A DNA stretch of 64,000 nt, taken from sequence record PQ015378.1. The stretch is one strand, 5' to 3'. Shown piece after piece: positions 10,405 through 40,063 of the stretch (the first letter of the stretch is position 1; each line of letters starts with the position of its first letter). Made by a program: the position numbers and the translations under genes. The notes under the pieces were generated by a model that was given only the letters and a program-made list of their open reading frames with translations, was not told where the DNA came from and did no database searches.

Positions 10405-10434
10405 TATTTAAACCGTTTAAAAGCCTATATTACT
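10405..10434 (+). promoter_or_regulatory. phiKZ-type early (virion RNAP) promoter
   Basis: TATTTAAACCGTTTAAAAGCCTATATTACT, identical 30-mer at 23692-23721; contains the TATTAC early consensus. Confidence 0.8.
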
Positions 10435-16173: not shown

Positions 16174-16192
16174 AATCTCAGATCTATATTAC
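16174..16192 (+). promoter_or_regulatory. phiKZ-type early promoter
   Basis: AATCTCAGATCTATATTAC, identical at 40045-40063. Confidence 0.8.
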
Positions 16193-17635: not shown

Positions 17636-17843
17636 GGAAATCCTCACCGACATCGGGGGCGGAGTTCTGTTGAATCCCACTCCTGAACCACATCGTCACG
17701 TCGATACATCCATGACGCCAGACGAAGCCTGTGCTGCATCTTTCGGGGCGCGGTACATGTTACTACGCATGCGGAAGCTTCACGATCCAGAGGACGTTGT
17801 GCGAGCTGCTCTGCCTTTAATGGAGAAGCCTCATGACAAATGA
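17583..17843 (+). CDS. hypothetical protein (start uncertain)
   Basis: fills the gap between flanking ORFs. Confidence 0.45.
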   Translation: MNSPKDSSLPFPENKSFEEILTDIGGGVLLNPTPEPHRHVDTSMTPDEACAASFGARYMLLRMRKLHDPEDVVRAALPLMEKPHDK

Positions 17844-18213
17844 AGAACGCTGGAACGAAGCCGTGGCTAAGGTTGCCGAGTCTGCCCGTGATAAGAGCAT
17901 CAATGATCGTTGGAAGGCTGCTATCAAAGCAACTCCAATGGACATCGCTGCTGACCGTATCGCGGATGAGCTGGTGGAAATGAACTCCACCGTTGTGGAA
18001 GAGATCTACACAGGTTTCGCTACTACCACAACCGACCAACTTGCGGTCATTACCGAAGCGGTACACCTCACAACGAACATGACGTTGAACGTACTTGACG
18101 ACCATGCTCAGATCTTCCCCCACGGTCTGGACCTCGGTGACAATCCCTGGTTCGACTACGGCGAGTTGCAAGACCGATTCAATCGCAACTACGCCGACGC
18201 CATCAACACATAA
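17833..18213 (+). CDS. acidic protein with C-terminal YADAINT motif
   Basis: GGAG RBS; shared C-terminal motif (see findings). Confidence 0.8.
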   Translation: MTNEERWNEAVAKVAESARDKSINDRWKAAIKATPMDIAADRIADELVEMNSTVVEEIYTGFATTTTDQLAVITEAVHLTTNMTLNVLDDHAQIFPHGLDLGDNPWFDYGELQDRFNRNYADAINT

Positions 18214-18222
18214 GGAGTCCAC

Positions 18223-18483
18223 ATGGACGACGCAGCAGTAGAAAACGCAGTAGCCTCCGTTGGTGAAGCGAACGACAACAAACAACGTGAAGTCCTCGAC
18301 AGCCTGATCGGCATCCGTATCGAAGCGGAAGCCATGCCTGATCGCACCAAGGCTGTGGACCACGCCATCTCTGAAACTGCCCGTGTGTACGAAGATGCTT
18401 TCGTACTGGAAGTCAGTGCCGAAGGTTGCGCAACCGAGTTCATGGGCGCGGCTGACCGCTACCTGGAACAAGTCAACTCGTAA
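18223..18483 (+). CDS. acidic protein with C-terminal YLEQVNS motif
   Basis: AAGGAG RBS. Confidence 0.8.
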   Translation: MDDAAVENAVASVGEANDNKQREVLDSLIGIRIEAEAMPDRTKAVDHAISETARVYEDAFVLEVSAEGCATEFMGAADRYLEQVNS

Positions 18484-18508
18484 CAAAAGTACTGGGTGGG
18501 GTAATAAC

Positions 18509-18844
18509 ATGAGTCACTCCGCCTTCGAGCGAAACAAAATCCGAAACTTCATCGCCAGCTCAGCTCTGGACGGTGTACACTTCTCTGAACAGGAAATACT
18601 CGCAATGACCGAACAAACCAAAATCGTCGAAGCCAACGTCGAATCCCGTGCCGAACTGATCGCCGCTGTCAACGCTGTCCGTACCGATGCCAAAGCTGAA
18701 GCCACTGTCTCCGCCGCTGTCGACGTCGCCATCACCGGTACTGTCCTGGCCGTAGAAGCCGCTGTCCTGACCGGCGGTATGGGTTCCGTGGTCGAGCTCA
18801 ACCAAGAGCTGGGCAAGTCCTGGGCCGAGACCGTCAACTCGTAA
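18509..18844 (+). CDS. Ala/Val-rich protein with C-terminal WAETVNS motif
   Basis: ORF with strongly phage-typical codons. Confidence 0.75.
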   Translation: MSHSAFERNKIRNFIASSALDGVHFSEQEILAMTEQTKIVEANVESRAELIAAVNAVRTDAKAEATVSAAVDVAITGTVLAVEAAVLTGGMGSVVELNQELGKSWAETVNS

Positions 18845-18903
18845 TCGGTCGTGGGGTCGTAATTCTATGTGAGCCAATTCCGGCTAATGACACAGAGGTT
18901 ACC

Positions 18904-19221
18904 ATGACTCCACTTCCAGAACCACACAACGATGTGAACCTGTTCAACGATACGCTCGAAGCAGCGCTCGTAGGCGCGTTCCTGTACGAGATCGATACCT
19001 TCTCTCGCCAAGCTGAGCAAGCACGTTACTACGTGTTCGCCAACGAAGCAGACGGCACTTCGTTCTCGTACAACATCGGTAACTACACCGACGCTTCCCC
19101 AGTCTTCATCCGCCTGAAGGCTAGCCTCGAAGGTCGCGGCTACGCCAACGTTCGGATGGAAGGTACGCAAGTGGTGTTCAAAGCTACTCGCAAACCAGTG
19201 GAAGAAGTCGCTCCTGAATAA
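18904..19221 (+). CDS. hypothetical protein
   Basis: GAGG RBS. Confidence 0.75.
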   Translation: MTPLPEPHNDVNLFNDTLEAALVGAFLYEIDTFSRQAEQARYYVFANEADGTSFSYNIGNYTDASPVFIRLKASLEGRGYANVRMEGTQVVFKATRKPVEEVAPE

Positions 19222-19231
19222 GGGCTTCTGA

Positions 19232-19564
19232 ATGATTCCGTTTTACTGGCAAGGTAGTGTGATCGGCTCGATCCTGGGCTGTATCATCATCCTGGTTGCA
19301 GGTTGGTTCTTCGTCCGTGCGAAGCTGGACTTCGTCTCCAAGAAAGCGCGCTTCTGGATCTCCAGTGCGATCCTCGCTCTCTGGATGGCATCGTTCATCA
19401 ACGTCGGACACACGCAGAACTCCCTCGGTCGACAGTCGTTCGATTCGGTTGGAAAGATGGGACTGGAAAACGTTGAACGCGTTTCCAAGCCTGGTCTGAC
19501 TCCAGCCGACGTGCGGCAGAAAGCCGAGGAAACGTCGCGCGAAATTCGCGCTAACGCCCAGTAA
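19232..19564 (+). CDS. two-TM membrane protein, partner of the SPFH gene
   Basis: two hydrophobic helices followed by a soluble tail. Confidence 0.7.
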   Translation: MIPFYWQGSVIGSILGCIIILVAGWFFVRAKLDFVSKKARFWISSAILALWMASFINVGHTQNSLGRQSFDSVGKMGLENVERVSKPGLTPADVRQKAEETSREIRANAQ

Positions 19565-19628
19565 CAAAAGCTGTCTCAGGTAGGGTCATCCGGCCCTACC
19601 TATCTGTCCCTCCAATAGGAAATCCGCA

Positions 19629-20492
19629 ATGAAATTCTTCTATGCAATCAAAGCTGCTGCACTCGCTCTCGTCGCCACCGTTGCCCTGACCGGCTGCTCG
19701 TTCGAAACCATTCCTCCTGCCTACAAAGGCAAGATCCTGACCACCACCGGTTACAACCCGGAGATCCTGGAACCAGGCAAGCTGACTACCTGGGGTCGAG
19801 ACAAGCTGATCCTGCTGGAAACCGGTACTCGCACCGTGACCGAAACCATCACCGTCAAGATGCAGGACAAGCTGGACCTGACCTTCGACGTCCGCATGCG
19901 TACCCGCATCGGTGGTTCGGACAAGGCCCTGAACGGCATGTTCAACGACATCCAAGTGAAAGACTCCATCGTATCCCTGCCACAGATCTACTCGGTCTAC
20001 GGCCTAGACGTGGTGCAGTCCACTGCTCGCTCCATCGTGGGCAAGTACAACACTGAAGACGTCGCTGCGAACTTCGACAAGATCACCAGTGAGCTGCAAG
20101 AGCGTCTCGTGAAGAACATGGCGAACTCCCCTCTGGAAGTATCGAACGTCACCCTGGGTAACCTCCAGTACCCGAAAGTGATCACCGATGCAATCGAGAA
20201 GCAGTCCGAGCGTAAGCTGGCGATCGAAACTGAAACCAACCAGCAAGCAATCGAAGCCGTGAAACGTGAGAACCAACTGAAGCTGGCTCAGATGGACCAG
20301 GATATCGAGCTGACCAAAGCCCGTACCCTGCGTGATGCCAACCAGATCACTGCCAACGGCCTGACCCCAATGCTGCTGTCCTATCGCGCTCTGGAAGTAC
20401 AAGAGAAAATGGCCGAGAACAACAACGCCATCTTCGTACCGTACGAAGCCATGGGCACTTCCGGTCTGAGCAACCGCATCTTCGCCAAGTAA
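19629..20492 (+). CDS. SPFH/band-7 (prohibitin-like) lipoprotein
   Basis: lipobox ALTG-C; band-7 core (ITVKMQDKLDLTFDV, VSNVTLGNLQYPKVITDAIE) and C-terminal coiled coil. Confidence 0.85.
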   Translation: MKFFYAIKAAALALVATVALTGCSFETIPPAYKGKILTTTGYNPEILEPGKLTTWGRDKLILLETGTRTVTETITVKMQDKLDLTFDVRMRTRIGGSDKALNGMFNDIQVKDSIVSLPQIYSVYGLDVVQSTARSIVGKYNTEDVAANFDKITSELQERLVKNMANSPLEVSNVTLGNLQYPKVITDAIEKQSERKLAIETETNQQAIEAVKRENQLKLAQMDQDIELTKARTLRDANQITANGLTPMLLSYRALEVQEKMAENNNAIFVPYEAMGTSGLSNRIFAK

Positions 20493-20499
20493 ACCGATC

Positions 20500-20537
20500 G
20501 CCGCCCTTCGGGGCGGCTTTCTGCCCCTTTCTTTTTT
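20500..20537 (+). terminator. intrinsic terminator
   Basis: GCCGCCC-TTCG-GGGCGGC, same hairpin as at 16131. Confidence 0.85.
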
Positions 20538-20548
20538 GTGAGGTTCAG

Positions 20549-20830
20549 ATGTCATTTGAATCTTTGTTCCACGACATGGTTATTGAATCCCAGAGTGATT
20601 CGTATACCCATCGTTCTGGCTTGAGTGACCCCATCAGTTCTGCGTATGACAATGGATTACGACACGGCATTCTCCACGGGATAACCCTAGGGTTCCGCAC
20701 CATGGCTGAGTCTGGTCATATTTCCGAGAAGATATACGAGGACTGGCATGAGTTCGTCTATTCCGACGCCATGTCCGATCCTCAGGAATTCCGAAAACGC
20801 ATCATGAAGAAACGGAGTGAAGGGGAATAA
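20549..20830 (+). CDS. hypothetical protein
   Basis: GAGG RBS. Confidence 0.65.
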   Translation: MSFESLFHDMVIESQSDSYTHRSGLSDPISSAYDNGLRHGILHGITLGFRTMAESGHISEKIYEDWHEFVYSDAMSDPQEFRKRIMKKRSEGE

Positions 20831-21428
20831 ATACGCAGGGCGTCAAGGTATGTATACAAACGCACCGGTGCCCTTCAATGAAACAAAAGATCCTCGCTTT
20901 CTTCTACGAGTACAGAGCCGTCATTGGTTTTGGTCTCGTCGTCGCAGCATACATCACAACCGTCAAACTGGCAGGCCTATCATGACTCTTCCAATCGTAC
21001 TCACTCATCCCGTTACTCTCGCCGTAATCGTAGTTGTCCTTCTGGTCATCTACTACTCGCTACAGTATTCGTCGCATGGATCTGTACGGGAATGGGCGGA
21101 TAAAGACTTCCCAGAAATCAAACACACTCCGAAACCTACGTGGCTGACGGGCTTCCGTTTCAAGCGTCATGGCATCGAAACCACTGCTCTCCTGGAAACG
21201 CCGATCTATCTCGAATACGAGACAGAGGGCAGACTGGGTATGTTCGGGGTTGCCGATAACCATGCCTGGAATGTGAAAGACAAAGAACAAACTTCCTACG
21301 ACTTCGGTGTCGATCTGGATCTGCTCGCTGGCGGTCAAGTGGCTGTTACCGAGAAGTTCAAGAAGATCAGCATCACGGAAATCGAACCAATCATCGAGGA
21401 CAATGCTGATGCTGGCGCCGAAGGTTAG
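20817..21428 (+). CDS. hypothetical membrane-anchored protein (true start may be 20982)
   Basis: TM segment LAVIVVVLLVIYY. Confidence 0.65.
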   Translation: MKGNKYAGRQGMYTNAPVPFNETKDPRFLLRVQSRHWFWSRRRSIHHNRQTGRPIMTLPIVLTHPVTLAVIVVVLLVIYYSLQYSSHGSVREWADKDFPEIKHTPKPTWLTGFRFKRHGIETTALLETPIYLEYETEGRLGMFGVADNHAWNVKDKEQTSYDFGVDLDLLAGGQVAVTEKFKKISITEIEPIIEDNADAGAEG

Positions 21429-21756
21429 TAGCAAACAACTGGAAGAAGCGTACGCCAAGACCAATGAGCTGGAAAAGGCATTGGTCCAATCTTCCGTAGA
21501 GCAGCGTATGCTGTTCTTCTGTGAAGTGCAAGGCGAGATGAACGACTTCAACGTGCCGAAGTTTGAGCGTGGTGCTACCATGTCTCAAGCTTTCCGCATG
21601 GGTATGGATTACGGCGTAGAGGCTACACTCAATGCCATCGAGAAACGCGGTCTCATGATCATCAACGACGAAACCCCAATCAACGTCGTTATGACTGATG
21701 AAGGCGCAGACCTCGGTAACATTGCTGACCTCTGGGCTAACTACATCAACTCGTGA
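21403..21756 (+). CDS. protein with C-terminal WANYINS motif
   Basis: GAGGA RBS. Confidence 0.7.
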   Translation: MLMLAPKVSSKQLEEAYAKTNELEKALVQSSVEQRMLFFCEVQGEMNDFNVPKFERGATMSQAFRMGMDYGVEATLNAIEKRGLMIINDETPINVVMTDEGADLGNIADLWANYINS

Positions 21757-21760
21757 GGTA

Positions 21761-22060
21761 ATGATGTCTCAATCCGGTCCTCCTTTTAGCGAAGCGGATA
21801 TCGCTATCGCTTCGACTCACATGGGTCGACAAGTATTCATGGATCAACTGGCGGATGACATGATCGGTATCCGCGCAGTGGCAACAGCGGATCAAATGAA
21901 AGCAGTCCATGCTGGTGTTCGTTTGGTCTTTGACTGTATTGATAACTACGGTTACCAGATCGTGGGTGAAGAAGGGGACTCCCTGAATCCACCACACGAG
22001 TCCGTGGACTTCGGTATGGCAAAGCTTTGGGACAACTATGTCGAAAGGGTTAACTCCTGA
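21761..22060 (+). CDS. acidic protein with C-terminal YVERVNS motif
   Basis: GAGG RBS. Confidence 0.75.
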   Translation: MMSQSGPPFSEADIAIASTHMGRQVFMDQLADDMIGIRAVATADQMKAVHAGVRLVFDCIDNYGYQIVGEEGDSLNPPHESVDFGMAKLWDNYVERVNS

Positions 22061-22106
22061 TTATATGTATCAACTGTCGATACTGTGATCACAAAGGAGC
22101 CATCCC

Positions 22107-22664
22107 ATGGCAGTTCTGAAGTTGCAAGAAGCTGTTGACGCTCGCGTAGCGCTCGACATCACTCCGGTCGAAGAGCGTATCAACGACCACCTGAAAACCC
22201 AGCGCGTTGTTGACTATGTCACCAACCCAGAAATCGCCAACCCGAATCTGCAAGTCAACGCCGATGGCGTACAACTGACCAAAGCTGCGCAAGAAGCTCT
22301 GAAGGCCTCGATTGAAGCCGCCGAGTGGAAGTCGGTCGAAGTCAAGCAGAACGCGAAGGGTGTCATCGTCACCTTCTCGAAGAACGAAAAGACCGTCCCT
22401 GGCGGCCCTGATGTCTACGTCGCTACCCCGACCAAGACCCAGGAAGATCTGAAAGTCGGCGACAAAGCCACCATCGGTCTGACCGTTACCAAGAATGGTC
22501 AGCCGTACACTGGTACCCCGACCTTCAGGTCGAACAAGACCAACATCGCTACCGTAAGCGCCACTGGCGAAATCGAAGCGATCGCGATCGGCTCGGCCGT
22601 CATCACCATCTCGGAAGGCGAGTTCTACTCGGTAACCGTGAACGTGACTGTCACCGCTGCCTAA
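22107..22664 (+). CDS. Ig-like (Big_2-type) domain protein
   Basis: C-terminal LKVGDKATIGLTV...FRSNKTNIATVSATGEIEAIAIGSAVITI pattern. Confidence 0.8.
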   Translation: MAVLKLQEAVDARVALDITPVEERINDHLKTQRVVDYVTNPEIANPNLQVNADGVQLTKAAQEALKASIEAAEWKSVEVKQNAKGVIVTFSKNEKTVPGGPDVYVATPTKTQEDLKVGDKATIGLTVTKNGQPYTGTPTFRSNKTNIATVSATGEIEAIAIGSAVITISEGEFYSVTVNVTVTAA

Positions 22665-22676
22665 GGCGACATAATT

Positions 22677-22704
22677 GGCTTCCCTTCGGGGAAGCCTTTA
22701 TGCC
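22677..22704. terminator. hairpin terminator between convergent genes
   Basis: GGCTTCCC-TTCG-GGGAAGCC-TTTATGCC. Confidence 0.8.
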
Positions 22705-22713
22705 ATCTTTTTT

Positions 22714-23658
22714 TTATTGCTGTAAGCGATAGATACCGGAGTGAGCTAATCCACCACCACCGTATCCTTCTACACAGTAGATGTCATCACCATTAACCAA
22801 CAGTGATTGGAAAGCGATACCAGCAAGGAAGTTCTTACACTTGGTCCAGGTATTGGTTGAGATCGTGTACAACCAGCAATCAGCAACAACCTGACCATCG
22901 GCAATACGACCACCCATCAGATACAATGAGTCGTCGGTATATCGGCGCATCACTACAGAACGACCTGCTGGCGCAACCGATGGGCGAGGTAACTTAGTCC
23001 ACTTAGCGGCAACTGGATCATACTCGCGAATGTCTTGATCACGTCCACCGGCGTAATAGTTTTCACCACCGTAATAGTAAAGCTTACCGTCCTGGATCCA
23101 CGATCCCGAACTGTGAACACCCATGGTCGCATCGTGGTAAGTCAGCTGTTCCCACGTCTTTGTTGTGAGGTTAAGCCGATAGAACTGTCTTGGTAAGTTC
23201 TCTTCAACCTGGTTAACGAGACCACCATAGACGTAGAGATAACCATCGAGTATGTCTGAACAGCCTCCGAGAGAGGCGAATGGCATGGTAACCAGTTCCT
23301 CGTATACATCGAGTGCGGGATCATACGTGTAAACCTTACGGCTCTCCTGCCCGTTGACCAGATTGAAACATCCACCGACGATGTAGATCAGATTCCCGTC
23401 ACTCGCTACGGAAGGAAGAATCAATGTAGTGGGCAAAGCACGCAATGCAACAAGGCTTGTCTTGTTGAATCGGTATGCCGTTGATCGACCAGACCCGGAC
23501 AACCCCTGTCGTCCGCCGAAGATGAAGAACTCGTCATTGTGCGTAATTGATCCAGCTTGGAGCGACACTTGTGTGCTGCCCGTACTCTGTATCACCCAGT
23601 TCCTTAGTTCGATTGGCGGAGTCTTATACTCACCAACCCCCAATAAAATTTCGTTCAT
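22714..23658 (-). CDS. Kelch-repeat beta-propeller protein with MNEILL N-terminus
   Basis: repeated Kelch motifs FIFGG, YIVGG, YVYGG, YYYGG, YLMGG with Y-D-P...W; lone - strand gene in the + strand block. Confidence 0.88.
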   Translation of the reverse strand: MNEILLGVGEYKTPPIELRNWVIQSTGSTQVSLQAGSITHNDEFFIFGGRQGLSGSGRSTAYRFNKTSLVALRALPTTLILPSVASDGNLIYIVGGCFNLVNGQESRKVYTYDPALDVYEELVTMPFASLGGCSDILDGYLYVYGGLVNQVEENLPRQFYRLNLTTKTWEQLTYHDATMGVHSSGSWIQDGKLYYYGGENYYAGGRDQDIREYDPVAAKWTKLPRPSVAPAGRSVVMRRYTDDSLYLMGGRIADGQVVADCWLYTISTNTWTKCKNFLAGIAFQSLLVNGDDIYCVEGYGGGGLAHSGIYRLQQ

Positions 23659-23691
23659 GTGCAAGCCCTCTAATAAACATAGCATTGTCAA

Positions 23692-23721
23692 TATTTAAAC
23701 CGTTTAAAAGCCTATATTACT
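23692..23721 (+). promoter_or_regulatory. phiKZ-type early promoter
   Basis: identical 30-mer to 10405-10434. Confidence 0.8.
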
Positions 23722-23750
23722 ACAGTGCATATTCTAATAGGAGGTTCCCC

Positions 23751-24173
23751 ATGCCAGTACAAATCAGTCAGTTACTCATCGGCTCCGGTCTCATGTTGGC
23801 AGCTATCTTGACCCTCTTCGGTCTCGGGCTTTCGATCTACCGACTGTGTCACTGGAAAGCGCATCGTGTGTTCAAGGATGGACAGTTGATCATCCGTATT
23901 CGTCAAACCGTCATCAGTGACAATGGTGAGCCGCGCATCCGTACGGGTTACCTCACTGCCGGTGGGCAGCCAGAGACGTTCCCTAACCTGTCTGCGATAC
24001 AAGCACACGCACAGTGCTGGGGTACGCTGGGCCGGGCGACTATCGAACTGGAAAAGTTCCAACGCGGCACTTCAGTGTTCGGTGAACCCACCCACATCAT
24101 CGAGGTGCTGGAGAAAACCACGTGGCCTCTCTTTGGCGAGGTCTGGAATCCAATCCGCAAAAAGGTAATCTGA
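23751..24173 (+). CDS. hypothetical membrane-anchored early protein
   Basis: AGGAGG RBS; N-terminal TM. Confidence 0.75.
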   Translation: MPVQISQLLIGSGLMLAAILTLFGLGLSIYRLCHWKAHRVFKDGQLIIRIRQTVISDNGEPRIRTGYLTAGGQPETFPNLSAIQAHAQCWGTLGRATIELEKFQRGTSVFGEPTHIIEVLEKTTWPLFGEVWNPIRKKVI

Positions 24174-24517
24174 TGGATAACTTTATCTTTGAAATCGTGA
24201 AGGGCGATCAGCACCTATATATCGTCCAAGGTGATCCAATCAAGAAGCCCGGTCCACTGGGGCCTCTGATGCCGAACTACACCCTGAAGCTGGATCCGAA
24301 ACCACGCAATGCGTTGCGGATATCGGGGTTCAAACAAGCCAAGGGTTTCCTTGACTCGGCAATTGCCTTGTCACCGAAAGCATTCCGTAAACTGGCACGT
24401 GTTGAAGAAGACTGGGATCGTCCCATTGCTGTCAACATGCGTCGCTGCAGTGAATCCAAAGGCCTCGTAGATTGCGTGGCCGCACAACGTCTGTATGTTT
24501 TTAAGGAGCAAGCATAA
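24173..24517 (+). CDS. hypothetical protein
   Basis: TGATG coupling. Confidence 0.7.
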   Translation: MDNFIFEIVKGDQHLYIVQGDPIKKPGPLGPLMPNYTLKLDPKPRNALRISGFKQAKGFLDSAIALSPKAFRKLARVEEDWDRPIAVNMRRCSESKGLVDCVAAQRLYVFKEQA

Positions 24518-25176
24518 TGCGTTTCGAACTTCATGCCCAACATACCGGTGTAGTCCATCCCTACATCTCTTTCCACAACCCAACCACCGCGATGCAGCAG
24601 ATCTGCAAACACACCGTAGAGAAAACCACCGTCGGTGTTCACGCTGGTGCTAAGTATGTGTTCGCAACTGGCGCCCACGGTTGCGGGATGCGTATCGACA
24701 TCACCACTGGTATCTACACTGGATTCCTGAACGAACTCAAGCGTAACCTGTCGTTGCTGTGTCCAGAAGGCAAGCCGCGTGATCTGGTTGTACACTACGG
24801 CCGTAGCTCCAATGCTCAGGCTACCTGTGAAGACATCACCACGTATCTCGAAGGTCACTATCGTCATGATCGTGAAACCCGTGAGATCACTTTCTTCCCG
24901 AAAGACGGTGACGATGCGCTCTACGTGATGGAGCTCGTTAGCCAGCACAAAGACCTGATGTGCCTCCGTCGCAAGGAAGCACGTATCGATCCAATCTCGG
25001 TAAAAGAACATGCCGCTACTGGTGTGTTCATCGACCTTGAGCGTTTCACGGGTGTGTCCTGTGTGACTGACGAAGATGGTGGTGTGCGCTTCCTGGCACG
25101 CAGCCATGATCAGTGGGAAGCCATCAGCTCTGCTCTGATGTCCTACAAGATCGCCTACGTCATGGACAAGTGGTAA
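24517..25176 (+). CDS. hypothetical protein
   Basis: AAGGAG RBS; TAATG coupling. Confidence 0.75.
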   Translation: MRFELHAQHTGVVHPYISFHNPTTAMQQICKHTVEKTTVGVHAGAKYVFATGAHGCGMRIDITTGIYTGFLNELKRNLSLLCPEGKPRDLVVHYGRSSNAQATCEDITTYLEGHYRHDRETREITFFPKDGDDALYVMELVSQHKDLMCLRRKEARIDPISVKEHAATGVFIDLERFTGVSCVTDEDGGVRFLARSHDQWEAISSALMSYKIAYVMDKW

Positions 25177-25529
25177 TGGACGCCTGGTATCTGCTGAAGC
25201 AGCTCTGCGAAGAACATCGGGATAAACCCTCGTTGCATTGGGAACTCGAATGGGTTCGTGAGCACACCGAACGTTACGAGGGTCACTGGCACCAGCTTGC
25301 CGTATGCCGCAACATCGTAACTCGGTACTTCAAAAACAAGCTTGTAAAGCAGGATGTGTTCTACAAGCCACGCCCTGAGAAAATATACAAGTTCCTTGGG
25401 GTGTCTCATGGGGCTGGTTGGTGTCAGGGTGAACGCAAATACGTTTACTGGGATCCGATCCATGGACAACTCTTCCACCGAGAACCCGCAGACTACCGAG
25501 ATCGGATGTCTGATGTGGGAACTCGCTGA
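25176..25529 (+). CDS. hypothetical protein
   Basis: TAATG coupling. Confidence 0.7.
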   Translation: MDAWYLLKQLCEEHRDKPSLHWELEWVREHTERYEGHWHQLAVCRNIVTRYFKNKLVKQDVFYKPRPEKIYKFLGVSHGAGWCQGERKYVYWDPIHGQLFHREPADYRDRMSDVGTR

Positions 25530-25743
25530 TGGTGAATACGATACGTGCCCGAAGTTTGGGCCGTACGTTTACATGCCGTACCGCCGGGTCAGTGTTAAGG
25601 ATAATGTCGTAAGGCTTATCCACCCTGACCCATCATTCGAAAGAGATACGCCCGAGTGGTTGAAGAACAAGACTTGGGCATTCACCGTCAATGACTTCTT
25701 TAAAGTCAACGTCATCTACAAACCTCAACAGGAATCAGTCTAA
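25513..25743 (+). CDS. hypothetical protein (start uncertain)
   Basis: fills a gap in the coupled operon. Confidence 0.55.
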   Translation: MWELADGEYDTCPKFGPYVYMPYRRVSVKDNVVRLIHPDPSFERDTPEWLKNKTWAFTVNDFFKVNVIYKPQQESV

Positions 25744-26441
25744 TGCAACTCGTCGCTTACATCGAAATCCCTACCGGTCGCGACATGGCCCCTCAGCGCT
25801 GGTACTTCCAGGAAGCTGAATCGTTTGGCATGTCGCAACCGTACTACGAACACTCGGAACACCAAGCGCCGCTGTGTGCTCTGGATTCCCGTGTGCGCAT
25901 CTTCACCAAGCCTAAGCAGATCCTGGATCTGTTCCAAGCTTTCCGTGGTACCGACCCGAACCATCGTACCAGCACCTTCGGCTATCATGGTATCACCGAA
26001 GCCGGTAACGCCTGCAAGCCATTCGCCACCGTACACAAGGGCGAAGATCGTCAGGAGTTGTTCGCCAAGATCGGCAAGCAGATGTCTGAAGGCGCTGCCT
26101 GGGCAAAGGCGATGGGCGAGCTCGGCATTCCTATGCCGTGGGTATTCTCCCCAGTAGCTGTCGGCCGTAAGGACACCGAACTGGACAAGTTCGAAGTCAT
26201 CGGCCTGTGCCAATCCCACATCATGAACCAGATGCCGGAAGATGAAGAAGCAATCCTCACCGGCCTGGCGGTGGTGTCGGATGCTGGCTGGCGCTTCACC
26301 ACTGTAGAGATCCATGGTCCGTGCGCATTCGTGCACATGTCCCGTGTGGTTAAAGGCAAAGACCAACATGCCTCTGCTGTAATCACCGCGTTCAACCTGA
26401 TGGACGCCACTGACATCGCTCAGATGAAGGAAGACATGTAA
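25743..26441 (+). CDS. hypothetical protein
   Basis: TAATG coupling; phage-typical codons. Confidence 0.8.
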   Translation: MQLVAYIEIPTGRDMAPQRWYFQEAESFGMSQPYYEHSEHQAPLCALDSRVRIFTKPKQILDLFQAFRGTDPNHRTSTFGYHGITEAGNACKPFATVHKGEDRQELFAKIGKQMSEGAAWAKAMGELGIPMPWVFSPVAVGRKDTELDKFEVIGLCQSHIMNQMPEDEEAILTGLAVVSDAGWRFTTVEIHGPCAFVHMSRVVKGKDQHASAVITAFNLMDATDIAQMKEDM

Positions 26442-26911
26442 TGATCGGTCTCGATAAAGTAGAAGTAGCCCCATCGGTAGCAGAGCGTTCCGACCCGGTA
26501 GTAATGATGAAGGGCTTCGGTTTCATCGTTCCTCCGGAAAAGGTACAGGCAATCCACGAAAAGTGGGATGCCCGCGATACCCTGCGGATGTACATGCGCA
26601 TGCGTGCGTGGCTCGGTTACACCCGTGAAGAAATCAACCAGAAGCTGGGTGAAGCCGTAGAAGGTAAGCAGCTCCTGGTTGAAGTCCATGATCTGGATGA
26701 GACCCATGCAGCCGTGGAAGCTGTGGAGTCTCGCCGTCATCTGCTGTCCAACGTCGTGGAAGATCTCAGCAACATCTACGCGTTCTCGCTGGAACTGGAA
26801 CTGGTCTACAACCCTGACCGTAAGCCGGAACTGTATCACCAACCACTGCAGCAACAAACTACGGCCATGGCTGATCTTCTTCGCGAAGCCATGGCAAAGC
26901 AAACGGAGTAA
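26441..26911 (+). CDS. hypothetical protein
   Basis: TAATG coupling. Confidence 0.75.
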   Translation: MIGLDKVEVAPSVAERSDPVVMMKGFGFIVPPEKVQAIHEKWDARDTLRMYMRMRAWLGYTREEINQKLGEAVEGKQLLVEVHDLDETHAAVEAVESRRHLLSNVVEDLSNIYAFSLELELVYNPDRKPELYHQPLQQQTTAMADLLREAMAKQTE

Positions 26912-26916
26912 TCGTA

Positions 26917-27195
26917 ATGGGCGTCAAGTTGACTAAACGCGGTAACGAGTGGACTGTGGAATTCCTTGGCAAAGAACGTCACGTGAAGCTCGAATCGGAG
27001 CTGGTCACTTGGCGCTCTCTCGGAATCCTTCCACACTCGGCAATCGAGTTCAATCTGGATCTGGATGGTGCGATCGAATCAATCGTCGAGCTGTCTACCC
27101 AGACCGAGTTAACCGAACTCGACATTCCAAAGAACCATTCCGTGGCTGGGATGGTTCGACCTACAAAGCCATACACGGGAGGAACCCATGCTTAG
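26917..27195 (+). CDS. hypothetical protein
   Basis: GGAG RBS. Confidence 0.7.
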   Translation: MGVKLTKRGNEWTVEFLGKERHVKLESELVTWRSLGILPHSAIEFNLDLDGAIESIVELSTQTELTELDIPKNHSVAGMVRPTKPYTGGTHA

Positions 27196-27595
27196 CAATA
27201 TCTTCATCGTCATCATGATCTTCGCATTCTTCTGGCTTGCCTGGAAGATCTCTGTGCGGATCATGGTTCCAGTCAACACCATCCAAATCACCGGAGCACA
27301 GCAAGAGTTCCGGGAAGGCTTCGTCCGCCGCATCGAGCGAATCGAACTGAAGACCGACAAAGGCCATCCGCTCTACGCTGGTAACAATGACTTCTACGTT
27401 ACCATCCAGAAGGGCAAGGTCAAGTACCACTCCCGTTACGTTCTCGACACCATCACCCCAATCATACGTGACGCTGAAGACATCCTGTTCTTCCGTATTC
27501 AAGTAAAGACGGTGAATGGTAAGGTGGTGAAGTTCAACCAAACCAACCTGTCGCAACCCAACGTAACTCTCCAGTGGAGAACCAAGGAGGGATAA
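27188..27595 (+). CDS. hypothetical membrane-anchored protein
   Basis: GGAGG RBS; N-terminal TM. Confidence 0.75.
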   Translation: MLSNIFIVIMIFAFFWLAWKISVRIMVPVNTIQITGAQQEFREGFVRRIERIELKTDKGHPLYAGNNDFYVTIQKGKVKYHSRYVLDTITPIIRDAEDILFFRIQVKTVNGKVVKFNQTNLSQPNVTLQWRTKEG

Positions 27596-27598
27596 GCC

Positions 27599-27781
27599 AT
27601 GTGTGGCGATATTCCATTCTTAGTAGGTGTCGTCTTGACACTGGGAGTGGTGGTCATTACAATTTTAGTGAGGTCTCGTTATGATCGAGAAGCTGAATCC
27701 GGGTCAGTTCCCGGTGCTCCAACGTCCAAGCAGCGTTGCACATTTTGTGCAGCACTCACAGTCGATGCCACAACGGGTTGA
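27599..27781 (+). CDS. small membrane protein (uncertain)
   Basis: GGAGG RBS and a TM segment, but overlaps the next ORF. Confidence 0.4.
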   Translation: MCGDIPFLVGVVLTLGVVVITILVRSRYDREAESGSVPGAPTSKQRCTFCAALTVDATTG

Positions 27782-28142
27782 AATCCCTGGTGGTGATCTG
27801 GCTGAAACTGGTTTCGTGAAAGTCACTGGCGAGAAGTCGGTTGACCTGTATGCCCTCTGTCAGAACGATGGTCGGGCCAAAACGCTGTCGGTCAAAGCGA
27901 TCGCTTACGTGGATGAAGGTGATAACCTCCGTATCCATGAACTGACCAACCGTGCACCGACTGATCTCCGTGATCCTGCCCATACCCGCAACGGTAAGGC
28001 ACGTGTGGAAATCGGTCACGTGACCAAGCTCTGCAATCTGCGCTGGGGTTTCAACCTGGTGATCGATCCGCTGACTGGTTACACCACCATCGAAGTCGAC
28101 CGGGAGTCCCCGATCGTTGGCTTGAAACTGCAGTTCGATTGA
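27681..28142 (+). CDS. hypothetical protein
   Basis: GAGG RBS. Confidence 0.7.
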   Translation: MIEKLNPGQFPVLQRPSSVAHFVQHSQSMPQRVEIPGGDLAETGFVKVTGEKSVDLYALCQNDGRAKTLSVKAIAYVDEGDNLRIHELTNRAPTDLRDPAHTRNGKARVEIGHVTKLCNLRWGFNLVIDPLTGYTTIEVDRESPIVGLKLQFD

Positions 28143-28147
28143 ATATC

Positions 28148-28173
28148 GGAGTCCCTTCGGGGACTCCTTTATG
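28148..28173 (+). terminator. hairpin terminator
   Basis: GGAGTCCC-TTCG-GGGACTCC-TTTATG. Confidence 0.8.
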
Positions 28174-28274
28174 TTCTAACTTTCTAAAGCCCTATATAAC
28201 AATCGAGCTGTTAATGTCTAAACCTGCAATCAATTCGATCCTAGATCAATCGTGGCGCAATACTCGTAAGGTAA

Positions 28275-28562
28275 ATGTTTATGATCAGCAATCTCTTCAG
28301 CCTGGCAATTCGCGGAATCGCAGCAGCGAAGGTCGAGCCGGAAATGGTATTGACTGCCGCCCGAGACATCTTCATCACGATCATCGACCGTGATGGAACC
28401 AGCCATGACATCCTCTATGCAAATGAGGGTGATCAAATCAAAGTTGAATCGGGAGATCCCCGAGACAGCGATTCGTTCATCTGCACCAACGTCGACAACC
28501 ATGATGAGATCGGTAGCGTAAGTTGCAACGATCTCGAAGATACCTTGAAGGAGTACACCTGA
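28275..28562 (+). CDS. hypothetical acidic protein
   Basis: AAGG RBS. Confidence 0.65.
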   Translation: MFMISNLFSLAIRGIAAAKVEPEMVLTAARDIFITIIDRDGTSHDILYANEGDQIKVESGDPRDSDSFICTNVDNHDEIGSVSCNDLEDTLKEYT

Positions 28563-28888
28563 TGGCCCTGCAATTCGATAACATCGTTGACTATATCTGG
28601 CAAATCTACAGCGTCGGCATTCCAGTCGAGTACGCCGAGAAGAACGCCAAGCCCCTCACCTACTACAAGCTGGTTCGGGTTCTGCAAAAGCTGAACATCG
28701 ATCCGACAGATCTGAACTCGGTACAACTGTTCTCCGAAGCAGTGCGCCTGGAAAAAGGTTCTCACTTCGACCCGCGTGCGAACCTGATGTTCCAACTGGC
28801 GGATCTGCATGAAGAGTGCGAGATCCTGATTCGTGGGTCCGGTGTCCTGGATAAAGGTGACGCATATGTCGACAGCATTAACAGCTAA
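28562..28888 (+). CDS. protein with C-terminal YVDSINS motif
   Basis: AAGGAG RBS; TGATG coupling. Confidence 0.75.
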   Translation: MALQFDNIVDYIWQIYSVGIPVEYAEKNAKPLTYYKLVRVLQKLNIDPTDLNSVQLFSEAVRLEKGSHFDPRANLMFQLADLHEECEILIRGSGVLDKGDAYVDSINS

Positions 28889-40044: not shown

Positions 40045-40063
40045 AATCTCAGATCTATATTAC
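40045..40063 (+). promoter_or_regulatory. phiKZ-type early promoter
   Basis: AATCTCAGATCTATATTAC, identical to 16174-16192. Confidence 0.8.

Follow-up and report, generated by a model that had tools for sequence, protein, structure and literature searches.

Introduction

A short terminal peptide that is common to otherwise unrelated proteins is well known in several biological systems. Encapsulin cargo-loading peptides, microcompartment encapsulation peptides and the capsid-targeting sequence of T4 internal proteins are each read by one receptor, and they mark proteins whose bodies otherwise have nothing in common. Such shell cargo peptides are frequently amphipathic helices attached through a flexible linker, and the one of T4 stands at the N-terminus. 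SspB and AAA+ proteases recognise their tags as free C-terminal peptides, and protease tags typically have a C-terminus that is both free and invariant. To our knowledge, most early genes of nucleus-forming jumbo phages are without a known function, and we know of no linear sorting or docking signal in these phages. Here we analysed a window of 64,000 nucleotides, bases 1-64000 of Pseudomonas phage RVTF4 (PQ015378.1; 302,537 bp; from pond water), in which an initial annotation, made from the DNA letters alone, had noticed six proteins that end in the same seven-residue C-terminal motif, referred to below as the tail. All coordinates are those of the record, which coincide with those of the window.

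The RVTF4 tail resembles the shell cargo peptides in being a short terminal peptide on proteins most of which are otherwise not detectably related. It differs from them in that no receptor or shell has been linked to it, that its genes look early rather than morphogenetic, and that it is acidic and not known to be cleaved. The tail shares a free C-terminal peptide with the SspB/AAA+ tags, and RVTF4 encodes an SspB-like domain. In contrast to the SspB system, however, this domain matches below the Pfam cut-off and also occurs in phages without a strict tail. The PicA/Imp pathway of phage-nucleus import provides selective trafficking in the same virus family, but a 2025 review describes its cargo as being picked via surface residues of the folded protein rather than by a terminal signal (PMC12908238). 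The results below show that the RVTF4 tail is strictly terminal, is selected at the protein level and changes in concert at position -6 among the paralogs of a phage clade.

Results

Six RVTF4 genes end in a tail that is selected at the protein level

The RVTF4 genome has the hallmarks of nucleus-forming jumbo phages, among them genes for a chimallin-type 'nuclear shell protein', for split RNA polymerases and for a large number of 'internal head proteins'. By DNA, its nearest cultured relatives are the Pseudomonas phages D6, HPP-Temi and Psa21, with the PA1C-like phages farther off. Six open reading frames (ORFs) on the + strand of the window end in [YW]-x-x-x-[VI]-N-[ST]-stop, and no other gene of the genome carries the full motif. 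Their ends and tails were as first annotated. GenBank lists each of them as a hypothetical protein with the identical stop, and places the start of three of them later (Table 1).

The shared ending is far more frequent than expected by chance. Of the 5451 stop-to-stop ORFs with 30 or more amino acids (aa) that the complete 302.5 kb genome contains, only nine end in [VI]N[ST], namely the six tail genes, two spurious minus-strand ORFs and an out-of-register ORF at 271281-271703. The background of ~5.5e-4 per ORF predicts ~0.06 such endings per ~110 genes, and by our own arithmetic the Poisson probability of at least six is ~1e-10. Inside proteins, the seven-residue pattern occurs 24 times in 222,611 residues, which corresponds to ~0.04 expected terminal cases in 393 genes. 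With six observed against ~0.04-0.06 expected, the motif is therefore enriched more than 100-fold at the terminus, and a chance ending was ruled out. The original observation was confirmed. The out-of-register ORF, which lies outside the window, encodes a 140 aa protein that ends in ...DEFAAINS, with the aromatic residue displaced by one position. It matched no family and may represent either a coincidence (~0.2 such endings expected per genome) or a remote seventh member of the set.

The shared ending might also be a DNA or RNA element at gene ends. In favour of this, the six genes lie in dense operons in which the end of one gene is near the start of the next. However, among the 47 tail copies with DNA, codons are free at every motif position. 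Counting back from the stop, position -1 is encoded by ten different codons, including both TCN and AGY serine codons and four threonine codons, and position -3 by eight. The tail Asn uses AAC and AAT at 34:13, compared with 363:129 in the long ORFs of the window, and so follows the codon usage of the genome. Each of the stop codons TAA, TGA and TAG is seen after the tail, and the downstream sequence is not conserved. Because codons, stops and downstream sequence vary, the constraint lies on the peptide and not on the DNA or RNA, and a nucleotide-level signal such as a terminator, coupling site or promoter was ruled out. Moreover, the motif is present again in every relative examined, which leaves a nucleotide element or a coincidence as a barely tenable explanation. 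Selection on the tail acts at the protein level.

The tail is conserved at the extreme C-terminus in a narrow set of phages

A scan of related genomes, proposed with the initial annotation, was carried out on 24-44 kb around the gene arrays. Genes with the tail were found in the syntenic regions of D6 (6), Psa21 (9), HPP-Temi (6), PA1C (5) and Phabio (4), and metagenomic contigs of ~315 kb and ~68 kb carry 7-8 of them per 20 kb. In this clade of Pseudomonas nucleus-forming jumbo phages, the tail genes sit in long + strand operons of small genes. The proteins have a median length of 100 aa, are mostly helical and are all acidic, with an isoelectric point (pI) of 4.05-5.17.

Across 68 non-redundant members with a terminal tail, Asn at -2 and Ser or Thr at -1 are invariant (68/68 each), and Val or Ile is found at -3 in 67/68. 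Position -7 is W, Y or F in 62/68, with H or L as rare exceptions, and one of L, F, M and I stands at -11 in 49/68. The core of the expression originally proposed, [YW]-[AVL]-[DEN]-x-[VI]-N-[ST], therefore holds in the relatives, but the expression as a whole was slightly too narrow, as F also occurs at -7 and positions -6 and -5 are variable. The hydrophobic positions -11, -7 and -3 (i, i+4, i+8) fall on a single face of an alpha-helix, suggesting that the tail is an amphipathic helix. Translation stops directly after [ST] in 68 of 69 non-redundant members. The metagenomic protein P0027 is the sole member with a degenerate tail, which has Cys at -3 and is followed by seven extra residues. Within ortholog groups A-H (defined below), the four key tail positions are 0.73-1.00 identical, compared with 0.32-0.66 for the bodies. 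Strictly terminal, with less conserved flanks and on bodies not detectably related, the tail has the sequence features of a short linear C-terminal recognition motif.

When 1.84 billion representatives were searched with a profile built from the six window proteins, no more than 20 matches came back, all of them tail-family proteins. A scan for the group C locus found two IMG/VR contigs only, one of which was already known. These results indicate that the tail family is narrowly distributed. A word-indexed protein search with 21403-21753 returned the query itself and nothing else. As judged from sequence, the six genes are part of a lineage-specific set in a clade comprising RVTF4, D6, Psa21, PA1C/HPP-Temi, Phabio and a few metagenomic contigs.

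Table 1. Coordinates of the tail genes and of associated features in the RVTF4 window
Feature	Coordinates	Strand	Product or position	Tail	Remarks
Group A	17833..18213	+	126 aa, pI 4.35	YADAINT at 18190-18210	stop 18211-18213
Group B	18223..18483	+	86 aa, pI 4.16	YLEQVNS at 18460-18480	
Group C	18509..18844	+	111 aa	WAETVNS at 18821-18841	GenBank start 18605 (XDJ14569.1)
Group E	21403..21756	+	117 aa	WANYINS at 21733-21753	GenBank start 21409
Group F	21761..22060	+	99 aa	YVERVNS at 22037-22057	GenBank start 21764
Group G	28562..28888	+	108 aa	YVDSINS at 28865-28885	
YhfG-type Fic-antitoxin-like peptide	18524..18583	+	~residues 6-25 of the 18509 protein		
phiKZ-type promoter core TATATTAC	16185..16192	+	nearest upstream of the 17833-22060 members		second at 10426-10433
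phiKZ-type promoter core TATATTAC	23713..23720	+	upstream of the operon holding the 28562 member		

Most bodies are not detectably related

Ortholog groups were obtained from BLAST and profile-profile comparison, with shallow alignments of 2-18 sequences. Groups A, B, C, E, F and G are those of the window, D and H are absent from RVTF4, and T1-T4 belong to the PA1C/Phabio lineage. When the last 8 residues were removed, hhalign linked B with C (90%), E with F (88%) and H with E-F (50%) and gave no further links; groups A, D, G and T1-T4 all remained below 20% in these comparisons of shallow alignments of short proteins. When the tail was included, weaker links appeared between A and F (64%) and between C and D (45%), and none for G, T1, T3 or T4. 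A MAFFT multiple alignment lines up a second helix in most groups. The bodies had initially been described as mostly dissimilar, with a few perhaps sharing one helix, and this was a fair description. On these alignments, a common origin of all groups is neither shown nor excluded. The motif-less neighbours 18904, 20549, 16999, 17342, 17583, 26917, 28281 and 28833 were rejected as decayed members, as none reached 15%.

AlphaFold2 predicted the group B protein as two helices at residues 3-37 and 41-60, forming a hairpin, followed by a loop and a terminal helix at 76-85, with a mean predicted local distance difference test (pLDDT) score of 82.9. The tail lies in this third helix, where block means are 72-78. 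The group G protein was predicted as all-helical at low confidence (pLDDT 57.6). In group G, the linker before the tail differs in both length and sequence between orthologs. Group A orthologs in D6, Psa21 and metagenomes retain the tail, and a Glu-x-Asn is conserved in helix 1 of groups A-C.

None of the six proteins matched PHROGs (best E 0.016), Pfam (above cut-off) or NCBIfam. The best E value was 0.53 for a PDB sequence profile and 1.5 for Foldseek against PDB, and the Psa21 ortholog was the only match in BFVD by Foldseek. In the literature, we found no paper on these proteins or on such a C-terminal tail in chimalliviruses. As far as these searches reach, the original remark that no described signal of this kind was known to its author holds.

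Paralogs of a phage share a local tail dialect

Position -6 of the tail differs between clades. It is aromatic in one of 36 copies in RVTF4/D6/Psa21-like genomes and is otherwise small or aliphatic. HPP-Temi and PA1C instead have Phe or Tyr there in 9 of 11 copies, and so do all four Phabio copies, whose position -3 is always Val. In 201phi2-1, the aromatic residue at -6 is Trp. The HPP-Temi ortholog of group C, which is 61% identical to the RVTF4 protein, ends in WYEDVNS, whereas all other group C members end in W-[AVS]-[ED]-x-V-N-S. These patterns indicate that paralogs with bodies that are not detectably related share the local tail dialect of their phage. Such a pattern would be expected if the tails co-evolved with one partner or if a C-terminal cassette were exchanged. 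The group C gene of HPP-Temi is absent from PA1C, and tblastn of the phage collection turned it up in no other PA1C-like record. It may have been transferred between phage lineages, with position -6 then switching to the local type.

The tail is also found on the gp258 family

Group T1 is the phiKZ gp258 family (PHROG 11061), which comprises PhiPA3 gp306, 201phi2-1 gp369, Phabio gp366 and homologs in PA1C and HPP-Temi. Its members resemble the window proteins in being small and acidic and in coming from the corresponding region of chimallivirus genomes. The PA1C, HPP-Temi and Phabio members end in Y-F-x-x-V-N-S, and their genes adjoin other tail-bearing genes. In contrast, the T1 body pattern is not detectably related to those of the window groups (hhalign maximum 8.7% against groups A-H), so that only the tail is common. 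Judged by eye from the sequence pattern, the T1 body appears to be alpha/beta. The T1 tail follows a linker of variable length, which is Gly-rich in Phabio. RVTF4 is without a gp258 ortholog, as tblastn of seven gp258 relatives against the whole genome gave E values of at least 0.24.

The exact terminus is not universal, since relatives in other phages end differently. The gp258 relative of 201phi2-1 ends in YWNQVSN, and a second gene of that phage in YWDMVNG. The PhiPA3 relative ends in YWNLISS and the phiKZ protein in YFIFVNRG. Transcript levels of phiKZ gp258 climb from 2 min post-infection onwards, and in gradients the protein sediments with the light fractions (supplement of PMC10914614).

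Tail genes lie behind phiKZ-type promoter motifs

The promoter core CTATATTAC occurs in 20 copies in RVTF4, all on the + strand and just upstream of genes. The window holds those at 10426-10433, 16185-16192, 23713-23720 and 40056-40063, and 16 more are in the remaining genome. By comparison with phiKZ, this core is probably of the early class, in which case the tail genes would be early genes. The core comes in two upstream flavours, 'TTTAAA...CC' and 'AATCTCAGAT', which may represent two temporal classes. The same core is the promoter consensus listed for phiKZ, matching that of 201phi2-1 (PMC7058600, table 2).

Tail-bearing proteins carry different N-terminal add-ons

The group C protein of RVTF4 contains an N-terminal peptide that resembles YhfG-type Fic antitoxins. 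Against Pfam PF10832, this peptide scores 18.2 bits, under the cut-off of 22.6, while the peptide of Psa21 gp352, a group F protein, scores 25.3 bits and is above it. The two peptides are 74% identical over 19 aa, and the YhfG-like peptide is thus carried by members of different groups, C in RVTF4 and F in Psa21. The same N-terminal extension as in the RVTF4 protein is present on the metagenomic proteins P0002, P0003 and P0017, and in D6 and metagenomic P0018 ~115-125 aa are added to the group C N-terminus. The presence of the YhfG-like peptide and of these longer extensions shows that the tail-bearing unit accepts different N-terminal add-ons. The RVTF4 peptide is of ~20 residues and weakly matches the YhfG profile. 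In contrast to YhfG antitoxins, it is fused to a tail-bearing domain rather than free-standing, and it has Asp where the Psa21 copy has Glu. The N-terminus of the RVTF4 protein may serve the phage by inhibiting a toxin of the Fic type, joined here to the tail unit.

The 32 codons upstream of the GenBank start of this gene are conserved as protein in P0002, P0003 and P0017, and a purine-rich stretch directly before 18509 was read as a ribosome-binding site. The annotated start at 18605 is therefore probably too late, and the longer form is favoured.

Discussion

A terminal element that is read by one partner fits the strictly terminal position of the tail, its selection at the protein level, the bodies that are mostly not detectably related and the concerted change at position -6. 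Our preferred reading, which we put forward tentatively, is that the tail is a portable docking element for one shared partner. The hydrophobic face of the C-terminal amphipathic helix, the invariant Asn and the free carboxylate would contact this partner, phage or host, and the tail would tether different bodies and add-ons to it. The bodies would supply individual activities, probably in host take-over or counter-defence. The variable linkers before the tail in groups G and T1 are as expected of a tethered peptide. In a more specific form, which we hold with greater reserve, the tail would be a portable C-terminal address label that links five to nine early proteins of each genome, unrelated apart from it, to a single dedicated reader, such as a sorting, scaffolding or timed-degradation hub, and this reader would co-evolve with the label by clade. 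Binding by the tail, the common partner, the early timing and the roles of the bodies are what we infer from these patterns.

Several points weigh against a docking role. No partner of the tail was found, and the phiKZ co-fractionation supplement lists gp258 in a table of counts from which no partner was extracted. The T1 relatives in phiKZ, PhiPA3 and 201phi2-1 end otherwise (VNRG, ISS and VSN). A failure to detect homology among helical proteins of 80-120 aa is no proof of separate origins, and the second helix lines up in most groups. The similarity at -6 could stem partly from lineage-specific duplications or gene conversion; duplication could explain part of the pattern, but not the HPP-Temi group C case. 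The AlphaFold2 model of the group B protein, with its tail in a third helix after the hairpin, fits a fold-back, so that an intramolecular or self-associating role of the tail is possible. The helix-1 Glu-x-Asn could pair with the tail in the same protein or in a dimer. P0027, whose tail is degenerate and extended, is also without the conserved helix-1 Asn. It may be a copy in decay, or it may hint that the two sites make contact. The initial proposal of a terminal signal for a common receptor is partly supported: the terminal position, the protein-level selection, the bodies mostly without detectable kinship and the concerted change fit it, while no receptor was found and self-contact is possible from the model.

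In the main rival explanation, the proteins are plain paralogs, a single very diverged helical family from tandem duplication. The tail helix would pack on its own hairpin or homo-oligomerise, with a buried Asn setting the register and no separate receptor. The tandem arrays A-B-C(-D), E-F and H suggest such a history, as do the homology of B with C and of E, F and H and the links that appear when the tail is included. The common size, charge and helix-rich architecture with its alignable second helix, the position of the tail in the AlphaFold2 model, and the joint loss of the helix-1 motif and the tail in P0027 also agree with it. However, plain paralogy does not explain why the stop residue is identical in 68 of 69 members of at least 12 groups, or why the tail follows linkers of varied length and composition in G and T1. 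It also leaves unexplained the presence of the same tail on the apparently alpha/beta body of the gp258 type, and the simultaneous shift of position -6 in all paralogs of a clade. We consider it a serious but somewhat doubtful explanation. Two further roles of the tail were set aside: targeting to membranes by an amphipathic helix, as both tail and proteins are acidic and hydrophobic segments are lacking, and mimicry of shell protein tails, as the RVTF4 chimallin termini show no likeness to the motif.

A special case of docking would be timed turnover, in which the tail is read by a phage SspB-like adaptor or by a host AAA+ protease and the early proteins are cleared together. SspB consists of a substrate-binding domain, a long linker and a short C-terminal tail. 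The RVTF4 protein encoded at 299708-300424, outside the window, has an N-terminal domain that resembles the SspB substrate-binding domain (PF04386 E 2.6e-4; six PDB SspB chains at E 0.001-0.004), with a long linker and then a short C-terminal tail behind it, as in SspB. Orthologs are present in D6 and Psa21, with partial matches in the PA1C-like phages and Phabio, and chimalliviruses may carry their own protease adaptor. The PF04386 match is, however, at 21.5 bits under the cut-off of 27. Two phages without the strict tail, 201phi2-1 (gp347, described as similar to phiKZ gp232) and Viktualia, also have genes annotated as SspB-like, so that the co-distribution of SspB-like genes and tail is not specific. 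In addition, the acidic tail with its polar end is unlike the C-terminal protease tags that we know of. Although a free, invariant end would suit a protease tag, we regard timed turnover as unlikely.

The tail might instead be a sorting signal to the phage nucleus, the early infection vesicle or the capsid, as the initial annotation had suggested. Other protein shells sort cargo by a short terminal peptide common to unrelated bodies, and the chimallin-type shell protein of RVTF4 means that compartments exist. Against packaging into the capsid, the genes lie behind phiKZ-type promoter motifs among small genes of no known function rather than among head genes, phiKZ gp258 is transcribed from 2 min on and sediments in light fractions, and in the regions covered no relative has a virion-protein annotation. 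The RVTF4 shell protein itself ends in a tail that bears no likeness to the motif, and the suggestion of nuclear import is at odds with the described recognition of surface patches (PMC12908238). Together, these results make a sorting signal quite improbable, more so than a turnover tag.

A conserved terminal motif that changes in concert points to a single partner and would make it possible to treat several dozen orphan proteins as one set. Its shortness also makes the tail a suitable handle for sequence surveys and for the prediction of complex structures, and the Fic-antitoxin-like peptide on one member hints at counter-defence factors in the set. If the tail is an address label, it would be the first terminal-peptide recognition system described for early proteins of chimalliviruses. 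If it is only a structural helix, the proteins still form a new, narrowly distributed family with a simple diagnostic signature.

Neighbouring genes

A gene for an SPFH/Band-7 protein (19629-20492; Pfam E 3.9e-15) lies in the middle of the array in every relative, and its N-terminus looks like a lipoprotein signal. It is flanked by 19232-19564 and 20982-21428, which were read as small membrane proteins. We found no evidence that the SPFH protein or these small membrane neighbours interact with the tail family. Unrelated phages of Pseudomonas, Erwinia and Klebsiella have SPFH homologs as well. The sole minus-strand gene of the region, 22714-23658, is annotated as 'Acyl CoA binding protein ACBP'. 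Its product has the look of a Kelch-type beta-propeller, with weak mutarotase and NanM matches below the cut-offs. The 185 aa protein of 22107-22664, which follows the E-F pair in all relatives, shows a weak Big_2 Ig-like domain at its C-terminus. The D6 ortholog of this protein carries the annotation 'major head protein', which looks like a mis-annotation.

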